64,000 bases of DNA, from the NCBI GenBank assembly GCA_047495785.1, contig JBLDXI010000017.1, positions 930,001 through 994,000 of the forward strand. The letters run 5' to 3'. Positions 4,172-62,829 of the stretch are shown here, in pieces. The notes under the pieces were generated by a model. The model was given only the letters and a program-made list of their open reading frames with translations. It did no database searches and was not told the origin of the DNA. The position numbers and the translations under genes were made by a program. Source of the stretch: Lepidodermella squamata. Its lineage: Eukaryota > Animalia > Gastrotricha. Position 1 is the stretch's first letter; every line of letters begins with the position of its first letter.

Positions 4172-7044
4172 CTATTGGCCGAGGTGTGCATCAGGTGTTG
4201 GCAGTTTAGGAGGGTAAAGATTAATAGCGGCTGGGTACCGAGTTCCAGCCACCTCAACTTCATATTGGCCACTCGTCAAATAATCGACACTGACTGGCTC
4301 GCTGCGATTTGCATTACTGACTAAAGCTAGGCAAATCATTCGCTCGAGCGAATAACCCCAGCCGCATGAAGTCGTATAGCCGACGTGTTCGCCATTTCGG
4401 AAAACTGGTTCGTTAGACCAGGGCCACGCGTCGACCCAATGCGGGTTGAATCGATCAGGGTGCAGCAGTAATTGCACAACACGGCGATAAACGCCCCGCT
4501 GCTTTTCTTCCAACAACGCGCGTTTGCCTAAGAAATAAGGCTTCGAGAAATCAATTCGAGCCTCTCGATCGCATTGAAGTGGCGTCACATTTGCATTCAA
4601 ATCAGATCCCTTTAAATTCGAAATAATTTAATCAATAAAAATCCATGGTTCTAAATATAGGACTTACCCAATATAGGAAAAAACGCTCGATCCGCAGTGA
4701 TCTCAAGGCATGGTAACCAGCTAATTGTACGCCGAAATCGCGTTCGTTGCAAAGCTGTGAATAGACATGGAGTGCGTACTCTGAAATAATGGAAAATTCA
4801 TGTATAAATTGATTGACACAACGTCGATCGATCACATTCATAATTATTTTATCGATTTTTTTAGCACTAAAAGGGCAGTCAGTCTCACCTGATGGTACGT
4901 AAAGCATGAAGCCGTCTTCGCCTGCATGCGTGAGCCGCATGACTAGGACGTCAACAGCTTGGCCGATGTTGAGAATTTTGCATGTCATAGCCGGAAAATC
5001 GGCTTTACTGACACGGGTTGACGATAACTTGTAAAGCAACTCCTCCGCATCTGGGCCAATCACATTCAGCGCAGTATACATCGAAGTTACATCGCGAAGT
5101 TGGACAGAGTTATTTGACGGTAGAAATTTGCTCAAGTAATGATAAACTTTGACGTGTTGAGACGGTACGCAAATAATGAAGTACCAATTTTCGTCCAATC
5201 TCAAAACGGTGCAGTCGTTTTCAAACCCGCCTCGTTCGTTCAACATTCCAGTATGAATAACGGTGCCTGGCGGGCGGTCCATGTTGTTAGCACACAGTTT
5301 CTGAAGCATGTCGACAACTTCGCGACCTGATGATCTCAGTTCAACCTTTGTAAAGGCACTCATGTCGATAATAGCGACATCTCGCCTACACGCCCAGTAT
5401 TCACGTTCGACGATTTCAAACCACGCCGGGCGGCGGTAAGACGGCTTATTATGCTCGTGAACAGTTATAGTCGGGTCGAAAAACTGAGGCCTTTCAAATG
5501 AATTTTGAGCAAAGAAGAAAGCGCCTTGTTGCAGCTGATAAGCGTATAAAGGCGTTGTTCGCATTGGCCGGAGTTTCGAAGGGGCATCTGAGTATATGTA
5601 AGGCCAACTCTGCAATGACACCGCCTCCTTCATTCTTTCACGCAAATAATGCGAGTTTGAATGGAAAGGCAAAAATCTTTGCAGATCGATCGACCAAACG
5701 TCGTAATCAACCGGTGGAAAATCGTCAACAATCCAGGAGGCGAGAGCGAATCCCATGCCGAAAGATGCTGAAAAACCCGACGAGTTACCGGCATTGCATA
5801 CCCAATAGTTGTCCAATTTAGGAGATTTGCCAAGAATCCAAGCACCGTCTGGCGTGTATGATTCACCAACAGTGGATAATTGACCGACAGAAGACTGCGA
5901 GATGATGGGAAGACGCTTCAAGATTGATCCAAGGAAAGGCGTTAATCTATCCCATGAAGATGCACTTTGAGATTGAGGAACTATCATTCCTCGATTAAGC
6001 GCTTGTGTCTTCAAAACTTTCTTTGCATCTGGGACAAATTTTGTTCGGCAAATAGGATTACCCTCGGCTTCAAATCCAGTTAATACTACTGCTGAGTCGC
6101 CAGGTCGAATATAGAAGTACATTGAACTGTCGTAATCGCGAACAACCGGCAACAAGTTAGGAGTTTGCTTCACTTCCTTCAGAGGCTGTGATGTGTAAAT
6201 CAATTGCGTACACGATTGCTGGGCCACTCGAACTAGCGGAATAGACATTGAACCAACCTAACTCGATATAAATAGATATCACGTTAAGTGTTATAAATCA
6301 GGTTCATACCTCTGATCCCCAAGAACCAGCAGCATTGACAAAATTGTTACATTGAACGCGGCCCATAGTTGTCTGAACTCCAATGACTCGCCTGTCCTTT
6401 GTTTCAATTTTGCTAACGGTGCAATTTTCAATCATTGTAACACCTTGCTTTCGTAGTTCAGTAACCAAAGCGTCAACAAGTAGAGCCGGATTGACCACGG
6501 CGTCACCAGGAGCATGTAACGCGCCGGAAAGATCAGATCTTTCAATATACGGATGGATGCGCTCAAGATCAGATCTACTGATAATATCAGTTTGAAAAAG
6601 CCGACCATACAGCGAGTTGAAGCGTTTTAGCTGAAGAAGACGATTAGGCGTCTGAGCCAGATACAATGACCCGGTTATATTATATCCAATGTCATATTGC
6701 TGCGCTAAATCATTAAGCGTTTTCAAAGTGATAGCAGCCAATCTTCCTTCAACGGGAATAGTACGAATACCGGAAATGAAACCGAGACCACGATTGGTCG
6801 CCCCTGAACCAAATGTTTTCTGGTCAACCACAACAATGTCGGAGAGCCGGCCCAGCTGAACTAACTGGTAAGCAACCGACAACCCAGCAATGCCACCACC
6901 ACAGACAAGAACGTTGCATGATGGTGGTAAATTAACTTGCTCCGATGAAGGTCGAGAAATAGTCGGTAAAGTTTCAGTGGCGAATGCTGACCACAACTTC
7001 GAGGTACACAATGAGCGCTTGAAAACACAGTTAACAAGCGCCAT
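4172..7044 (-). CDS. PDPR: Pyruvate dehydrogenase phosphatase regulatory subunit (FAD-dependent DAO + GcvT domains), 4 exons
   Basis: N-terminal mitochondrial-presequence-like segment, VLVCGGGIAG FAD motif, ESYTPDG, IIDMSAFTK, GMLNERGGFENDC; C-terminal WPWSNEPVFRNG...YSLERMICL...GQYEVEVAG resembles PDPR rather than DMGDH/SARDH; introns ~6308-6258, 4888-4781, ~4666-4610. Confidence 0.88.
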
Positions 7045-51523: not shown

Positions 51524-53672
51524 TCAATTTTGCCACCAGTTGTGATAATATCCGTCCTGAATATGGCCGAAAAGAGCGGCTAACAGGCGTTCGCAGTGCT
51601 TCGTTTTATCCGGAAGATTCGCCTTGACAGAAATCAGCGAGGTCTCGGGTGTAATTTCGCGTTCCAGATACCCGGAAAGTACTTCAGTAGCACGGCCGAG
51701 ATCGGTCTGGAATGACTCGAACAGGCCTACCGGGTTTGACGGCGTTTGAAAATAGCCGAACATGAACGAATTTTTCAGCGCTTCTCGGGATTTTCTCAAC
51801 ACAACGACAGCTTTGTAAGCAAATGAAATCTGAAAAAATTGAGAATGTTTCATGCAAAAATACGCTAAATTCTATTAAAAAATTACCTCATTTTTTGTAG
51901 CGTTGTTCTCGAGCCAATTTTGAACAGCTGGGCCAATGGCTGTTTCAAGCTTGTTAGAAACACGATGAGCTTCATAACGCTGAATGTAGGTCAATTGGCG
52001 TGAAAGGTCAGCTACAATCTGCGAGTTTTTAGCGGTTAATTGGATAGCGTCGCCAGTGCTGCAGTAGTAGTGATCGGTTTTCAGGCAAATCCAGCAAAAA
52101 TGAGTTTGGCATTTCTAGTAGAAAAAGTAGAAAGAAATTAGAAATGAGAAAAAACTTTATTTTATAGAGTTGATATAATTGATTAACATAGGAATTTTTA
52201 GAGAATTTTAAGAGAATTTTCGAAATTTTACCAATTATTATGTTTGCAAATTTTTGCCTCGAGCTGCCTTTCAGGCGCCAGGCCATTAAGGTAGGGGAGG
52301 GTTGCTCGAGAAGCGCAAAAACTTCGGCTTGGAAAAAGTAAACCAAGCCGAGAATTCAATGCCAATAAAGGCGATTGAAGTTGTTGTTTGAAAGTTGATT
52401 CTTAAATTGACCTTTTCCTCACTGCTTTTGCAACAATTACGCAAAATAGAATGGGGAATCATTAGCATATTCACAAATCGAGTAACAACAATTCTATTGC
52501 GCAGCAAAAAAGCGCATTATCTTAAATCTAAATTGGAGATAAAATACGTTGCCAAAAATGCTTATCTGAGCAAAAAAAATACGAGCAGATAAAATATTTT
52601 TGAGAAAGCCAGGCGAAAAAATTGATTCTGTTTTACCAAAATAAAGAAAGTTCTGCGACAAAACGTGATAGAGAATAACGCATACCTGACAAAACATGTG
52701 ATTACAGCCACCATTCTTCTCGATAGGAACTTGGCATTTAGGGCAAGGTTTCGTGTATTCAACCAGCCACTTCAAGTTACCAATGCGGTCAGGTGATTTC
52801 TGCATAATTTTCGCCCATTTTTCCACCATTTCACACGGAAACGGAAAATGGCCCGGTTTCTGGCAGGCAAAGCAGTATGACGCGCCACACGCTGAGCAAT
52901 TCACGCTTTGAGCAGTGAAATCGGCAACTTTAAGCACTCGATCACAGCCTTCGCCCGGGCACCACGCCATCAACCGGTTTGCCTCGACGAAAGAATTCGC
53001 GATTAAACGAACATAGCGGTGATAAGCTGGCAAAAAGCGATCGGCAGAAGACAGAATGCTCAGAACAATCTCGTCGTCATAGCAACGGGTGCATTTGAAA
53101 CCAGGGCATCGAATAGCAGCACCGACAGCATTTTCCAGGGTTTGAGATTCAAAGTAAGACACGCAGCAATCACGACAAAATGCGTGGCCGCATCTCAACC
53201 GAATCGCCTCGGCGTTTTCAAAATCGCACAAGCAAATTTCGCAGTTGAAATTCGAATAAGGAGGATTTTTTGAGCTCACATCAGCTTTGCGGCGAAATAA
53301 ACCGGGAATCAGGACGGAAACAGGGATGTTCAGTTTGCGTAAAATACCGAGACGTAGCTTGCTATTGAAGTAATCTTCAAATAATTTGGCCTTGTCCCAA
53401 TGAAAATGGCCGAGTAGAAGTCGAGCGTAGACGTGTTCGATGCATAAAACGTCGGCAGTTTCGTCCAAACTGCGGTTCATCAACTCGATAACTTGGCTGC
53501 TGGACAGCGATTCGCATGAGTCGTCGATGGCAGCCGATGAAGAAGATGATGAGTTCGACAACGAGCGAAGAAAAGCTTCATTTTGCGGTGATGGTGACTC
53601 ATCGCTTTGAATCAAATCGAAGTCATCGTCGTCGTACTCATCGTTTAAAAACAGGTCATTGTCAATTTCCAT
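51524..53672 (-). CDS. ARIH1: Ariadne-1-like RBR E3 ubiquitin ligase, 3 exons (53672-52686, 52114-51888, ~51829-51524)
   Basis: Acidic N-terminus, UBA-like RLLLGHFHWDKAKL, RING1, IBR, RING2 TKPCPKCQVPIEKNGGCNHMFCQ|KCQTHFCWIC with catalytic Cys, Ariadne domain ATEVLSGYLERE matching ARIH1; divergent, may be a paralogue. Confidence 0.88.
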
Positions 53673-54644: not shown

Positions 54645-55212
54645 TTACGCGGTTATAGCCAACCATTTTATCAACCGAGATTTCAGGTTGCGAGCCGCTT
54701 CTTAAACAGAATGAAATGAAAAATTGATGATTCAAAAATATCTGGGTAAAACCTTGCTCAAGTTGCTTGACCAGCGCTTGTTTCCGCAAATCGCGAAGCC
54801 AAACGTAGAATCCGTTACTGCTCGCAATTTGCATGCACATCTGCGGCGTCAGATACTTCGGGCAAAAACTTCGATTTGCCGCCAATTTAGCCGGATCAAT
54901 TTGCCCGACCAGTTTCCTTGCCAGCATGGCGAACAGCGCTTCGTTATTGGATTTCAACGAACTTATTTGCTCTTTGCGTGTTTTTGAAACAATTGTTGGA
55001 GATGAGATTGATGGCGATTTTATAGCAGCAGCAGGTGAGGAATTCGTTCGTGAAACAACCTTCCCGAGGTTGCCGAAATGGTGGCTTCTAGCCGCCGACA
55101 TTGCCATAACGCCGACATTGTTATCATCCGACTGCTGGCATGCGCTGAATTGAATTAAATTCGCGCAAATTACACAACATAGAATATGCAAATGATGAGC
55201 AGGTAAATTCAT
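54645..55212 (-). CDS. Secreted CP-x7-C family protein A (2 exons)
   Basis: Signal peptide; CPKYLTPQMC...FYVWLRDLRKQALVKQLEQ|EAARNLKSRLIKWLAITA*. Confidence 0.8.
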
Positions 55213-55720
55213 TATCGAAAATAAATTAGGCTAGTTCTTTTCCCCCAAATTTTATTACTAGTACGCAGTAATTGCGCGTAATTGATTTTAGTTTGCGTGA
55301 AACATTTTTTCTTATAGACAAAACATGATACAATGCTGACGTAGGCTGTAGGTAATGAACGCTGCTTCCTGTTTTCGATTTTAATTTATAATTCGAGAGT
55401 GAAATAATCTCCTGTGATACGGACTCACTCGCCCACCCAAATCGCTCTCGGCTCTGTTATAATATCAATGCTTTTAACGTGATTTTTACATTGTTTGTCT
55501 ACACTAATTGTCCGTTGTTGAATGAAGTCAAAATTTTGGGAAAAAATGAATTTATTATTCACAATATCATATTAGAAACGTTTTTATCTCCGAAGAGACT
55601 GCGTAGTAAGTAAAAGGAGAAATCGTCATACTTAGAGGTATAACAATCACATCATAGGTGAATTAAGGCATTAAGACGATACAAAAAGGTGTATTACAAC
55701 GGGTTTAGTTTGAAACACTT

Positions 55721-56204
55721 TCAACTTTCAATTAAATTGTCGCCATTAGTCTGCGCAACGTGCCAGTTGATTAGTTTCTTCTCCAAGGCTCGAGCTGTTT
55801 CTGGGGTTAAAAAAGAGAGAATTAGTATTCAAGTTTTTGATCTGGCATAAAGTGGTACCTTCTTCGAGCTGCTTGACAATCGCCTTTTCCCTTAGCTCGC
55901 GAAGCCAAACGTAGAAAGCCGGGTTTTCTTCCATCTTCTGGCACATTTCTTTGGTGAAGCCTTCAGGACAGACCGATTTATTCGCGAAGATTTTCTTCAG
56001 ATCCATCCTCGCGACCATTTTCTTCGAAATCATATCGATCATTTGCCGATTTTTCGCATTCTTGTCGATTTTCAGCAAATAGCCGTCGTCGTTCAACAGT
56101 GGGTCGAAGCCATCAGCAGCTGCTTCCTTAGCTATCGTAGCTAGAGCATGCGAGCTAGCGCAGTAAAAAACCACCATAAGGGCGACTGAAAAAATGACCT
56201 GCAT
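55721..56204 (-). CDS. Secreted CP-x7-C family protein B (2 exons)
   Basis: MQVIFSVALMVVFYCASSHALA signal; CPEGFTKEMC...FYVWLRELREKAIVKQLEE|ETARALEKKL...ES*. Confidence 0.8.
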
Positions 56205-56672
56205 TTTTTTCGTGTAAAAAAGCGAAATTATCAAATGGATGAAATCTGTAAAACTGCCGAAATGCGCAGCGGTCACGCGTAAATTCACGATTTATACACC
56301 CTCGTGTCGCCGGTCCAGAAATGTAAACGCCCACAAAGCGAATTTGAAAAATTTAGCATCCAGCATCAGCATTCTTGATGCGAAAATAATTACACATTAT
56401 TTTATGCGGCGTAGCTATTTTTGTGGGCTCCGAGGGGATTTTTCAAATTAATTCTCACACCTGCGAGATGACGTACTTGAATAGCTACGCAGTTTATTGT
56501 TTCGTGAAAAATTGATAGTGAAAATTAATCAATCAAATAAAATATGGCGTGAGAGTGAAAAATCCCAAAAATACTCCATACAATTTTACGGTTGTTCGAA
56601 CAAAAAAAGTAGTTCGAAAAAAATATGTGAGATTTACTTATTTGACACGCAATCATAATCAATATTGAGAGA

Positions 56673-57187
56673 CTAATTAATCGATTTCAATTTTTCGAAT
56701 TTTGATCTCATGTCTTTTATCATTGTCCTCGCCATTTTCAACTTGATAGCAGTGGCAGCTTCTGCAGAAACAATTTGAAAGGTTAAGAGGTTTATCTTTT
56801 ACAAGTTAACTCACGTTGTTGCATTTGTTCGATCATAGCCCGTTGACGGAGCTGGCGCAGCCAAATGTAAAAAGACGGGTTCGATTTGCCCATCTGGCAC
56901 ATTTGAGGGGTAAGGACTTGAGGGCAAATGTTAAGTTTCAACAGGTGTTTTTGGTCAATTTTCGAGACGTAATCTTTAGCCATGGATTCGACTTGTCGGT
57001 TCAACTCGCCCCGAGCGGCCATATCAGCGTAAAGCTGGTAGTAGATAGATTTCGCATTTTCATACGCTGAAATGGATGAACGAGACGTTTTCCTATCTTG
57101 GGACGGCGACTTCACCATTTGTATTTGTCCCGCAAAGGTAAACGGGCAGAACATTAGTAGACATAGATTTATCTGCAAATACTTCAT
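56673..57187 (-). CDS. Secreted CP-x7-C family protein C (2 exons)
   Basis: MKYLQINLCLLMFCPFTFA signal; CPQVLTPQMC...FYIWLRQLRQRAMIEQMQQ|QAATAIK...IN*. Confidence 0.8.
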
Positions 57188-58014
57188 TGCGAGAAAAAGT
57201 AAGACGATTCAACAGACTGGGAAGCGTACATTTTGCTACTTCAATTTTCAATATGAGTTCGACGAGGAGGTAAAAATTTTCTGATCCTGTCCCCGCAAAC
57301 AAACCTTGCTGCGATGTGAAGGCATGTTGATCACACACTTCTGTCACGCCCAGTTTTATTAATTAGCCTTGGGTGACCCATCACGAACATATCAGTTCTT
57401 ATTCTTAGCCTCGAAATTGCGGGGAGGTGACAGCTAATTTTCACGATTGGTCTACAATCTCAGGGCGAAAAGAACCACGTTAAGTGCAAAAGGCTCGTCT
57501 GTGGAAGCAGACTCATCAATCGATCAGCATAGTTGTCTCATTAGTGTAGAACAGTGTCATTCAGTTGATTTTACTTTAACGGACTACATTCACGTTCCGT
57601 AGGAGTTGTAATATACCTACTCATCTTCTTAATGGAAAAAGTCGAACTGAAACTTTAAAGTTGTCCAAGACCTATTAGGAATAAACGTGCTTTGCTGAAA
57701 CGGTGGACCTTTATTTGAGTTGCAATTGGAGATAATCACGGATTACGGAAATCCATGTTGATACCCGCTACCTGGAATGAGACATGTTTATCCTCGCTGG
57801 CACGTAAAATTTGCCCCCTTGCTATCACCACGTTTTAGGTACTAAATGGAGAAATTGGACACCGACAACATAGGCAACCGACAAATACAAACAAAATTTT
57901 AATTTCTGCGTAAAATTCCGGTGTACAAAAGTTGTTGACAAGATTATCCAGAAACCGAAAGAGCAGTCTCAAACAATATGCCAAAGGGGTTTTCAATTTT
58001 TATCTAAAAATTAA

Positions 58015-58672
58015 TTATCGTATTGGAGCAGTCTTAGCTTTGTTAGTTTTTTGCGAGAGAGATTTGGCCAAGTTAGCGTTGAACGATTCCAGTTGCTTTT
58101 GAACTTTAATAGCCGTTTCTAAAAATATCGGAAAAACGTTAGAATTTTCTTAGTACTTCATCGAGAAAGATCGACTTACCTCTTTCCAATTGCTTGACCA
58201 AGTAACGTTGACGTAGCTCCTTTACCCAGACGAAAAACGCCGAGTTTGAGTCAGCCTGCTGACACATTTCCTTCGTGAAGCCATCAGGGCAGATGTTACT
58301 TGTGAAAAGTCGGGGCAGGTCCATTCGCGAGACAATTTCTTTCGCAATGTCCTCGGCCATTTCCTTGCGATGTTCCTCGGTCTCCATTTGATACCTTGAC
58401 GCTATTTCCAGCCAGTTTTTCTGCTTCTTCGTAAAATTTTGGCCAGCTATCAGTTTAGAGAGTCTGATCGCTATGGGTACTTTGGTTGTGAATAACGCAG
58501 GAATGCGAGTAGGTTTGACGGTAGTCGGGCCATTTTCTGCTTTAGTTCGATTTTTCTGCCTCTGGCTCATCAGTCGTCTGAGCATTGCTTCCGAACTGCT
58601 TGCTTCCACTTTAGTGAACACCATAAAGGTAACCAGGGAGAAGAAGCAGATGAATGTAAGAAACACTTTCAT
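58015..58672 (-). CDS. Secreted CP-x7-C family protein D (2 exons)
   Basis: MKVFLTFICFFSLVTFMVFTKVEA signal; CPDGFTKEMC...FFVWVKELRQRYLVKQLER|ETAIKVQK...IR*. Confidence 0.8.
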
Positions 58673-60479
58673 TTTAAAATGTAAATATTAATCGTGCAGA
58701 TCAACTGCCTAAAAAAAAGGAACGAATGAGAGGTATTGTTGTAAGAACTTAATTCCTTCCGACTCGCAGATATTAGGCTTCAATTTGCAACTTTTTCGCA
58801 CTATGCGCGACGTAATCGGGCAATCGGCAGCACTGAAATCGAGCCCGTAAAAGCCGCCAGCGGGCAACACGCGTAAGCCTACCCCTTCCTGTAGCCTGAC
58901 AGCACGACAACGTGACAACAGCGGCCTGCGTGCTTAGGTGGCGCGATAATTTCCTAATAACGACTACATCCTACATCGTGATTGGCGCATTTCGTGTCTG
59001 CCCATCATATGTTCGCCGGTCAGATGACCTGAAACTATACCGAAAACGTGGGCTCAGATTTGATTGCTTCTGTCATGTATTTTTGGCGTGAACATTTAAA
59101 AATAGCTTTGGCAGTTGGCGCAATCAAAATTGAGTGTCTCATTTCACGCAGACGCTCAGACAATTTCAAGTAATACAAATTAGAAGATCCCGGCGAGCCA
59201 AAAGTCCGGTCAAGTAGGTCATAAGTTTCTCCGATTGGCCAACTCTATACACGTTAATGGACGATGGGCGATCAAGAGATATCGAGCATATTATGTTGAT
59301 ATTATGAATTGAAGCCATTACACCCGCGCAGTGAATAGTGGGAGCTTACATTTTGAAACCCGATGGAAGCTTTCAGCTTCGATAGGAATTAGAACATGAC
59401 CTAGAAGCCGATAAAGCGTCGCATGTAATGCATTTTCTACTCAGCGGGGAAATGATTGTAAAAGCCCGTTGGCAATGGATTAGATTGTGAGCATATTAGA
59501 ACATCATAGCGTAGCATTGATGTTCAACTTGTTTACGGAGTTTCCGCAGTTTCAAAAGTGCAATTCTAGTAAAATAAAAAAGCTACGAATGGGATATGGA
59601 AAATAATACAATAAATCCGCCGGCCGCCTGACGGGATGTGTATTAACTCACGTCAAGCGAACCGATTGTCGGAGGAGGAGGGTTGTCGCGATCGTAAAAT
59701 TTATTCCAAAATAACCCATGGATGAAGTCATAATTGCATCATCACTCGAAATAGCTAAAGAAATTTTGCTGATCTATCCTGGGCTAGGAAGCGTAGGCCC
59801 GCTCTATTTTAAGACAAAAAGTTAACGTTATTGTCCACCTCAAATAATGGACGAAATCGAGGTTTAATTAATGTTTTGGTGGCCGCATCTGGCTATAGCC
59901 GATCTGGGCAATGTTTATATACCATCTGCACTGTCAAGGAGAAGTTGTTTTCGTACATTTTTCCACGCCTCAATTAATTTATTCGCTGCGAAGTTATTCC
60001 CCAAGAGTGAAGCAAAACTCCGCAAATAGGTATTTCGAAAGCAATGTAAGTTGCATGGGCGTTAAATCTATATGCCTAGATTCTTCCGTTATTATTCATG
60101 TCCAGCTTGCGGTTTCATACAGCTTTAAACCCAAAAGTCCGAAAAATGCGTGGGTTTTTACATTTAAAGGCTCCAGTCACCAAAAACTGTCAGGTGATGC
60201 ATATGGCCAGACTATAAAAAAAACACGGTCACGAGATACTTAATTTCCAAGGGAACATCTCCGTCTAAAAAATCCATTTGGTAATGTTTGTTCCGTTTAT
60301 TGTTTATTAATTGAAAAAATCACTCTGCTGTTGGAAATGTATTAGGTAAAAAGATAAGATTTATCTGAGTAATACACGGATTGCACTGATTTGTTAACAT
60401 CAGGACTAGAGGTGATACTAGTTGAATAAAGGGGGGACTATAAGACGAAACCAGTATACGATTGTTCGTTAAAAAACTG

Positions 60480-60982
60480 TTATGGCTTCGCATCCAACTG
60501 TTGAGTTCCGCCGCCAAATTGCATAGTTAGGATCTTCTTTTCCAGATTTCTCGCAGTTTCTAAACATTGAACTTTTGCAGTTGAAAATTCCTTTTTGAGA
60601 AACGAGTGTTACCTTCTTCAAGCTGCTTAACAATAGCCTTCTGCCGGGCCTCCTTCAGCCAAATATTAAAATTGCTATTTGACCTAGCCTGTCGGCACAT
60701 TTCAGGTGTCATGGCATTAGGGCACATGTCAGAATCGAAAATTTTCGCCAAGTCCATACGCGCGACCATTTGCTTCGCAATCAAGTTGACCATAGTTTTA
60801 GCGCGGTTCTCTTGGTTGTCATATGAGCCGATCAGCTGATTTCCGACTTGCCGAACGTTGTTCATTGATACCGGCGGTGCTTTCGTCTTTGTACCATCAC
60901 GCCTGACTTTTATTGACGAAGCTAGAGCAACGCACAGCGATAAGACAAAAACAGCCCAGCTTATAGATTGCGTTACGTTCAT
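60480..60982 (-). CDS. Secreted CP-x7-C family protein E (2 exons)
   Basis: MNVTQSISWAVFVLSLCVALASS signal; CPNAMTPEMC...FNIWLKEARQKAIVKQLEE|ETARNLEKK...KP*. Confidence 0.8.
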
Positions 60983-62208
60983 GACTTTTCGTTTTAATAT
61001 CTAAAGCAAGAATCATTTGTTTTATTATGGCGCAGGTAAAAAGGGAAGGTCATTCATAAGTCCACCCACAGTATTGACTTCGAGACAGACAACGTTGAGG
61101 GGGTTATTAGAGTGGGCGCATAGTGTTAGAGTGGGGCTCATGGCTTCAGAGACAACGGCTATACTGGAATTGAATTCGAAAACACGGGTGAGGAAATTAC
61201 ATGAGACGCGACAAAACTTGTTAAATCATTGATTTTCCAGCTCGGTGAGTTTGAGTCATACACAGAATTATAGCAATTTGTAAGGATATGAACAATTTTG
61301 GAATCAGACATGAGAAACATATCCCGCAATAAAACGTGTGAGCCATCGATTTCCAACATGACAGAGCCGGCATAGATGGCTATCAAGGTGTGGAGGATTC
61401 TGCTCGTATTGCATTCTCCCCATGACCCCATTTTTACGCACAAGAATAGCATGCTTATCGAAAAATGGCCCAAGAAAGGGGGTAGAATATTCGTAAAAAA
61501 AAGAGAGCGAAAAGAGATTACGGGAATATGCCAACGTCCCTTAGCGCTAATGACGCAAAGGCAACAGGGTCAACGCCCATCTCTCGTGATTTATTACTAT
61601 CGATTTCACAAGAGCAAAAAAGACGCACAAATGCGCTGTCGACTAACAATTCTACAGGGATCTCTGCCGAATGTTCAGTCATGTTTCAGACGAAAAATCT
61701 GCTATCTATAATTTGGTGTTGTTGCGAGTTTATTCAAGCGAGCAAGTGAGATAAAATTGGCGATATGTCTGAGTCATCCTTATTATTCATTACCTATATT
61801 GACCTGAGATATTCATGCCGCAAAGTCCACCTCGCTGAAATTTGATCGTCCAGCGTTATTTTTGCATGGTACACGTGGGCAATCTTCTAAATGAGTTTTG
61901 TGGTTGCTGAGCTTGGGACGCACCGGGTGCCAAAGTGACAGAAGTCACGATCGGTTAGTAAGCTTCACGGATTTTAAGTTGTCCGTATTTGATTGTTCAC
62001 TTATAGGGAAGTGGCATCCTATATCCTATCACGCTGAGATACAAAATATTTACGCAAAGCAAAAACCAAAGTTGTATAAAATGATAATCCTAATTAGTGG
62101 AAGGGATGTTTATGGTGAAGTTGATAAATTTGGGACATCAACTCGATTCAGTTCCTACTCTTCAAAATGTCCCTGAGAAGGCTTGTTTGTAAACATAATG
62201 ACCGCAAG

Positions 62209-62829
62209 TTAGTTTTCGATTTCCTTAGTGAATCTGGCTAGTATTTGAGCCACTCTTGCTGGCCGAAAATCTGGCGATGAGAGGAACCTTCGCTCTAGAA
62301 TTTGCGCGGTTTCTTAAGAGAAAAAACAGAAGATTTATCAACCAGGTACTTGAATGTTGTATATACCTTCTTCCAGCTGTTTCACGAAAGCTTGCTTGCG
62401 TAGATTTCGAGTCCAAATGTAGAAAGCAGCGCCTTTTTGAACCTGCCTGCATTGATCTTCGTCGAAATCTATCGGGCAAGCCGCAGATGCGAAAAGGTTC
62501 GGCAGATCCATTTTTGCTACAATAGACTTGGCAATAACTTTTATCAGTTCACGAATCTCGGCCAGCATTTTTTGCCGGTTTGAGTTGTAAGACGAAAACA
62601 CAGCAGGGCGGTTGACCGAGTTTCTGCCTGATGTTTGCGGCGGCAGTGTATGATCCTGTAACTCATCTTCGAGAGCGTCTGGGATTGCTTTCGAAATTGC
62701 AGCGTCGATTTTCGTGCGGAATTGTTTCCCGAATGTCAGTCGTGCTTCAACCGAACTTTCAAGAGCCGGAAATTCGCTGCAGGTCACGCACGCAAATGTC
62801 GTGACTATTGCTATGATTGCTGCGAACAT
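62209..62829 (-). CDS. Secreted CP-x7-C family protein F (>=2 exons; possible extra 5' exon via acceptor near 62858)
   Basis: MFAAIIAIVTTFACVTCS signal; CPIDFDEDQC...FYIWTRNLRKQAFVKQLEE|ETAQILERR...EN*. Confidence 0.78.

Follow-up and report, generated by a model that had tools for sequence, protein, structure and literature searches.

The genomic stretch analysed in this work, hereafter the window, comprises 64 000 nucleotides of the gastrotrich Lepidodermella squamata (positions 930 001 to 994 000 of contig JBLDXI010000017.1, abbreviated C17). At positions 54645–62829 of the window, i.e. from the stop codon of gene 1 to the ATG of gene 6, it carries six co-oriented open reading frames (ORFs) on the minus strand whose C-terminal halves are mutually alignable. 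In a search within the window, a hidden Markov model (HMM) profile of the family matched all six genes with E values of 1e-28 to 1e-32, which excludes chance similarity among them. The ORFs, the domain alignment and the end coordinates all agree with the original prediction, made from the letters and a list of their ORFs, which had described a six-gene family of secreted proteins at this place. The family proved larger than that. A profile built from the six genes found two further tandem copies, genes 7 and 8, beyond the end of the window (C17:994238-994906 and C17:995688-996169), with the same intron and the same start of exon 2. The full array comprises eight genes (C17:984645-996169) that code for precursors of 141–205 amino acids (aa), and it lies within a superfamily that has 146 or more matches in the genome. 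The same profile search found five more distant close copies on contigs C12 and C19, bringing the close copies to 13 on three contigs. These and all other profile searches of the animal's own genome covered the 121.2-Mb, 151-contig assembly. A profile scan for degenerate relic copies between the array genes found none.

Gene models and protein features of the array

Each of the six genes has a GT donor one base past the codon that ends the sequence VKQLE(E/Q/R), or IEQMQQ in gene 3, followed 52–61 nt downstream by an AG acceptor and by an exon 2 that begins with (E/Q)(T/A)A and runs for 18–34 codons to the stop. The phase-1 donor is found in all 13 close copies, 16 codons past a conserved Trp (or 13 in a single copy, where three residues are deleted). 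The predicted phase-1 intron at one and the same codon in all six genes is thus borne out, and because the reading frame resumes in a conserved exon 2, the C-termini of the unspliced ORFs are wrong, just as had been proposed. In the searches the exons were handled separately; they were joined solely for calculating length, isoelectric point (pI), Cys count and helix periodicity.

All eight array proteins start with a hydrophobic segment of 17–27 residues that ends in a (-3,-1) pattern of small residues. On this heuristic reading the signal peptides of the original prediction are upheld, and the proteins presumably enter the secretory pathway. The mature part of each protein contains exactly two Cys residues, those of the motif C-P-x7-C, which points to a disulfide that closes the ring between them. 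Only six residues (C, P, C, F, W and one R) are the same in all 13 close copies. The ring motif had initially been given as CPxxxTxxMC; the C-P-x7-C frame of that motif is conserved, but its Thr and Met vary, as in gene 6 with its ring CPIDFDEDQC. Helix 1, upstream of the ring, is conserved as strongly as the rest of the domain. The long helix downstream starts with F-Y-x-W-L-R-x-L-R, and its coding DNA is interrupted by the phase-1 intron. Because the first ~11 residues of exon 2, (T/A)-A-R-x-L-E-K-K-(L/I), are also conserved among the copies, the domain spans the intron and comprises ~85 residues. The prediction was right about a conserved C-terminal domain, but its ~70 aa have to be extended further into exon 2.

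The pI values of the array proteins range from 6.7 to 10 and lie at 9.7–10 in four of the eight. There are neither conserved dibasic sites beside the ring or the helix in the CP-type array, as we call it after its ring motif, nor a Gly + basic amidation signal. The core helix has a hydrophobic moment of 0.04–0.15, with hydrophobic residues on more than one face, as is typical of a buried rather than a membrane-lytic helix. The part encoded by exon 2 is moderately amphipathic, its moment being mostly ~0.35 (range 0.16–0.62). Across all eight proteins, the hydrophobic positions of the long helix (1, 4/5, 8, 12–14, 17, 22, 25 and 29) recur with a period of ~4.0, not 3.5–3.6.

The gene models, all on the minus strand, are as follows. 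Gene 1 (54645..55212) consists of exon 1 at 54753-55212, a 52-nt intron (GTTTTA..AG) at 54701-54752 and exon 2 with the stop at 54645-54700; its spliced product has 171 aa (HMM E value 8e-29). Gene 2 (55721..56204) starts at an ATG at position 56204 that lies within a longer ORF opening with GTG. Its exon 1 (55859-56204), 58-nt intron (55801-55858) and exon 2 with the stop (55721-55800) give a protein of 141 aa (1e-32). The most divergent copy is gene 3 (56673..57187), which codes for 153 aa with the exon junction IEQMQQ|QAA (2.5e-29); here exon 1 occupies 56815-57187, the 53-nt intron (GTGAGT..AG) 56762-56814 and exon 2 with the stop 56673-56761. For gene 4 (58015..58672; 198 aa, 1.6e-32) the corresponding positions are 58180-58672, 58119-58179 (61 nt, GTAAGT..AG) and 58015-58118. 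Gene 5 (60480..60982), of 149 aa, is composed of exon 1 at 60613-60982, a 53-nt intron at 60560-60612 and exon 2 with the stop at 60480-60559, and has its intron position in common with an environmental sister sequence, P0002 (locus L073), discussed below. Gene 6 (62209..62829; 188 aa, 1e-28) has exon 1 at 62367-62829, with the ATG at 62829, a 54-nt intron at 62313-62366 and exon 2 with the stop at 62209-62312.

TATA and poly(A) signals near the array genes were inconsistent. Gene 1 is preceded, ~60 nt upstream, by a near-palindromic sequence, TTACGCGCAATT (window positions 55270-55283), and gene 7 by a similar one, TTACGCGCAATTT. TTACGCGCAATT was rejected as a shared upstream motif of the two genes, since the window contains no excess of it: 10 matches, with 11.6 expected.

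One flank of the array is formed by an ORF for an ARIH1-type RBR E3 ligase (52494-53672, minus strand; domains UBA_ARI1, RING and IBR), which sits between a cluster of Cys-loop receptor genes and the array. On the other flank, past a gap of ~5 kb, the next gene that can be recognised after the eighth copy is a homeobox gene (L072:7238-8023, minus strand, equivalent to C17:1001238-1002023; Pfam Homeodomain, E value 1.6e-23) that looks Msx-like.

The superfamily and its environmental relatives

The extent of the superfamily was explored with several profiles: A3, built from 13 CP-type domains; A4, restricted to the CP type; A5, which adds weakly matching sequences to A4; and A6, built from 20 domains of what turned out to be the majority type. 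Profile A4 matched 30 places in the animal's own genome, including weak matches on C15, C29 and C33, and reached loci of the majority type at E values of 5e-4 to 4e-3. With A5, 285 first-look candidates yielded 146 matches among the 150 that were scored, a number that is a lower bound. The matches form many tandem arrays, e.g. on C3, C33, C54, C15 and C42, and more than 130 of them are on contigs other than that of the array described here.

Members of the majority type follow the pattern R-R-x-x-x-C-x9-C..S-F-Y-x-W-A-x-x-x-A-x-x-I-M-x-G, including some with Q-P-F-Y-L-W-A. Those of their ORFs that have an N-terminal Met begin, on the same heuristic reading, with hydrophobic, signal-like segments similar to those of the array. 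A profile–profile comparison of A3 with A6 (hhalign) gave a probability of 96.1% and an E value of 3.4e-9 over 45 columns, and hence the array belongs to a helical-hairpin superfamily of the C-x8-C / F-Y-x-W kind. In all four alignments, A3, A4, A5 and A6, the two Cys residues, the Phe and the Trp are invariant; the Cys pair encloses 8–9 residues and F-[YF]-x-W follows within 3–9 residues of the second Cys.

The two types differ in several respects. CP-type domains have a Pro after the first Cys, W-L-R-E-L-R in place of W-A-x-x-x-A-x-x-I-M-x-G, a longer C-terminal helix and no RR or Gly flanks. The phase-1 intron 16 codons past the Trp is common to all intron-bearing CP-type copies, whereas no consistent donor was found at this point in the majority type. 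As judged by sequence, the array is a distinct CP-type branch of a large single-disulfide helical-hairpin superfamily.

A separate observation concerns the majority type itself (loci L052–L071, e.g. C3:930-948 kb, C33 and C15). In its members an RR is conserved 3–4 residues ahead of the first Cys and a Gly behind W-A-x-x-x-A-x-x-I-M, a prohormone-like layout that is absent from the CP-type array.

An exhaustive HMMER search of 1.84 billion representative proteins with the 13-member domain profile returned 19 matches. Eighteen were accepted as relatives, every one of them an unnamed product on a metagenome contig in ENA. The remaining one (P0011), a bacterial surface-type protein of 1437 aa from a JGI metagenome, was rejected as a low-complexity false positive: its E value of 7e-7 is spread over five short stretches and it consists of repeats of the kind C-Q-T-Q-A-x-V-D-A-A-F-T-A-W-L-A. 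Word-indexed searches with profile A4 and a further profile, A2, found nothing beyond these environmental relatives. The prediction of a lineage-specific family is thus in line with the search results.

The environmental contigs are eukaryotic and compact, and there, too, the family genes form clusters. TEAD and formin genes adjoin a tandem pair (L014:2155-3464), and a TAF10 gene is surrounded by three to four copies whose orientations are mixed (L015:7458-11146 and L016:3289-8172). Synteny of the array with the TEAD and formin contig was not found on the visible sides. An indication of the source of these contigs comes from a multi-exon PDPR-like gene of the window (4172-7044, minus strand; domains DAO, FAO_M and GCV_T), whose product is 75% identical to an unnamed metagenome product from one of the samples that contain the relatives, as compared with ~40% identity to nemertean, mollusc and annelid proteins. 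This argues that the environmental relatives belong to the same poorly sampled spiralian lineage. As far as has been seen, the relatives would be restricted to the gastrotrich lineage, that is, to the source animal and the environmental relatives.

The phylogenetic tree joins P0002 and gene 5 as sisters (support 97/85). P0001 is nearest to gene 8 through short branches in an unresolved fork, and was used as the counterpart of that gene. A single clade (88/90) unites all eight genes of the array with four environmental sequences and a divergent copy from the animal's own genome (on C42), which indicates that the array duplications predate the split from the environmental relatives. In the two pairs formed with P0001 and P0002, the proportion of synonymous differences (pS) is saturated (0.84 and 0.93), that of nonsynonymous differences (pN) is 0.13 and 0.30 in the domain, and pN in the linker reaches 0.50 and 0.43. 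These comparisons support strong purifying selection on the domain in both pairs. The genes had been taken for intact paralogues of ancient origin, and the position of P0001 and P0002 among the array genes agrees with this.

The environmental sequences also bear on the splice model. On its own contig, P0001 has its donor at the corresponding codon, and its exon 2 opens with ETARKL; its intron, measured by eye from the printed sequence, exceeds 100 nt, versus 53 nt in its array counterpart. P0002 has kept the donor position, with an intron of 63 nt versus 53 nt in gene 5, and its exon 2 starts with ETAKNL. Three intronless environmental relatives (P0008, P0013 and P0017) read uninterrupted across the junction with a matching helix, and an intronless paralogue in the animal's own genome (C12:527 kb) is likewise continuous there. 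The conserved donor and exon-2 start, the low pN relative to pS and the intronless read-through support both the splice model and purifying selection independently of transcripts.

Predicted fold and possible functions

AlphaFold2 (AF2) models were obtained for the domain of gene 5 and for P0008, with predicted local distance difference test (pLDDT) values of 72.6 and 76.7, respectively. After helix 1 and the loop of the Cys ring, both models show a short helix and then a long one, which has ~40 residues and spans the exon junction; the model of P0008 has an additional, variable terminal helix. A Foldseek search of the PDB with either model gave no match below an E value of 2, so that the structure search suggested with the original prediction retrieved no described fold. 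In a wide search with VIA, the best Z scores (5.6 and 4.2) belonged to generic helical proteins, under the noise level of that tool for helical proteins. Pfam searches with the six ORFs and 27 family members (E values up to 1 or 0.1) produced only scattered sub-threshold matches to differing families. The PDB sequence matches of profiles A3 and A5, namely SNF5 (E values 0.005 and 0.18), eL29 and a pheromone-binding protein (1.4), were all regarded as noise. In the ESM Atlas, the best feature score of gene 5 was 0.75 and that of P0008, to arthropod lipid-binding clusters, 0.85; neither rose above noise, and the P0008 match was put down to chance because of its low count of shared features. A description of the domain or of the superfamily was not found in the literature searched. 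The domain thus remains as unrecognised as it was when first noticed, with nothing above noise in Pfam, PDB sequences, Foldseek or VIA.

We favour an interpretation in which the array proteins are secreted, intact binding or ligand modules. Removal of the signal peptide would leave a fast-evolving, probably disordered linker ahead of the ~85-residue domain, consisting of helix 1, the 10-residue ring closed by the sole two Cys residues, the short helix and the long helix of ~40 residues. The domain would be released whole, not cut into peptides, and would act extracellularly as a small binding or ligand module; its conserved hydrophobic positions would form the core of the hairpin, and the variable surface, linker and tail may give each paralogue a partner or location of its own. 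The array itself is read as an ancient CP-type branch, kept by selection, of a superfamily restricted to gastrotrichs. The strong purifying selection in the two environmental pairs suits an endogenous role, such as signalling or association with matrix or cuticle, somewhat better than one in an arms race. An intact module is favoured because the whole domain is constrained, conserved dibasic and amidation sites are missing, the moment of the core helix is low and the pI is variable. Taken as a whole, including its well-supported parts, we consider this interpretation probable.

Several points weigh against it. The signal peptides were recognised by visual inspection and hydropathy rather than with SignalP; the disulfide is deduced from the Cys count, not from model coordinates; and the confidence of the AF2 models is only moderate. 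The protruding long helix suggests that the true unit may be an oligomer or a complex, and this interpretation cannot explain the ~4-residue recurrence of hydrophobic residues along that helix. Exact-product look-ups for the array genes and one intronless paralogue came back blank, although the collections searched may not include the records of this genome, and no transcript, proteomic or expression evidence was obtained. The measurements also leave a ligand indistinguishable from a structural protein, a carrier or a defence protein.

Among the alternatives, the least unlikely is that the proteins are structural or matrix components (of cuticle scales, mucus, an adhesive or the egg envelope), organised in the genome like the cuticular protein families of insects. 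Copy number and tandem arrays fit such a role, as do the conservation of the domain while its flanks drift and the variability of the linkers and tails, which are in part basic or low in complexity. However, there are no repeats or cross-linking motifs, the single disulfide would be intramolecular and the analogy with insects covers genome organisation only, so that we consider this role improbable. Defence effectors, i.e. helical proteins that are membrane-active or bind microbes and have been tandemly amplified as in other invertebrate immune families, come next and are similarly doubtful: the small size, secretion, huge lineage-specific tandem expansion and high pI of half the array proteins would suit them, but a core helix of low hydrophobic moment, with no more than moderate values in the exon-2 part, the wide spread of pI and the strong purifying, not diversifying, selection in both environmental pairs would not. 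We place slightly below these the possibility of prohormone or neuropeptide precursors, from which convertases would release a calcitonin-like peptide of ring and amphipathic helix to act on a receptor. The ring-then-helix layout and the RR and Gly flanks of the majority type speak for such processing; the CP-type array, however, lacks the conserved cleavage and amidation signals, its helix 1 is equally conserved, all 85 residues are under purifying selection and no Pfam hormone family scores. On the whole, the computed features give little support either to an amphipathic peptide that acts on membranes or to a hormone released by cleavage.

It is far less probable that the proteins are secreted to modulate the Cys-loop receptor channels encoded nearby. 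The receptor gene cluster does lie upstream in the same window, but the ligase gene intervenes, a homeobox gene borders the array on its other side, more than 130 family matches are on other contigs and the environmental clusters adjoin TEAD, formin and TAF10 genes instead. With the intervening ligase gene and the copies on many contigs, the link to the receptors is positional only, as had been anticipated. The idea of non-functional sequences, either decaying duplicates or chance ORFs, could appeal to the blank transcript look-ups; it is hardly credible given eight intact copies that have all kept their splice sites, with no relics between them, and it is contradicted by the selection data, with domain pN far under pS in both environmental pairs.

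A bolder extension of the favoured interpretation, offered by analogy and as a rather unlikely proposal, is that the superfamily constitutes a private gastrotrich repertoire for extracellular signalling or recognition, with hundreds of disulfide-stapled helical ligands comparable to insect binding proteins or ciliate pheromones. The CP-type array would then comprise its oldest and most constrained members, endogenous ligands with conserved receptors.

Significance and likeness to known systems

Few animal phyla have been studied as little as the gastrotrichs, and the genome paper on L. squamata (PMC11660948) says nothing of gene families or secreted proteins. Taken alone, the array is just another secreted gene family of restricted taxonomic range. 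With 146 or more matches, and with no Pfam model, solved relative or paper found for it, the superfamily amounts to a sizeable piece of unexplained lineage-specific biology, and its domain is a candidate for a new small disulfide-stapled helical scaffold. Since the array represents the oldest and best-conserved branch, with counterparts in the environmental relatives, it is the most tractable entry point for work on expression, localisation and structure.

Several known systems were compared with the array. Saposins are set apart from it by six Cys residues, in three disulfides within a bundle of four or five helices, versus two Cys residues in the array; no Pfam SapB match was found, and saposin folds were not in the Foldseek or VIA match lists. 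The secreted protein 7B2 (secretogranin V) contains the sequence PPNPCP..C, in which Cys-Pro opens a short disulfide loop. We followed this up as a lead only and rejected it, as Pfam Secretogranin_V scores on none of the 27 members (E values up to 0.1) and the flanking sequence is unrelated. Peptides of the calcitonin/CGRP type also combine a disulfide ring with a following helix in a secreted precursor. Their ring, however, has 7 residues and stands at the processed N-terminus, and their C-terminus is amidated, whereas the array has a 10-residue ring between two conserved helices, no flanking dibasic or Gly-basic sites and no Pfam Calc_CGRP_IAPP match.

A parallel in kind is offered by the chemosensory proteins (CSP, Pfam OS-D) and odorant-binding proteins (OBP) of insects, small secreted all-helical proteins that form large, fast-diverging, tandem and lineage-restricted families. 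There was no Pfam match to OS-D or PBP_GOBP among the array proteins and family members, and no match to a CSP or OBP fold. CSPs have four Cys residues, OBPs usually six, and both have a compact ligand pocket, whereas the array domain has two Cys residues and a hairpin with a protruding helix. The likeness is one of kind only: secreted helical proteins with short loops closed by neighbouring Cys residues, encoded by tandem, lineage-restricted gene families.

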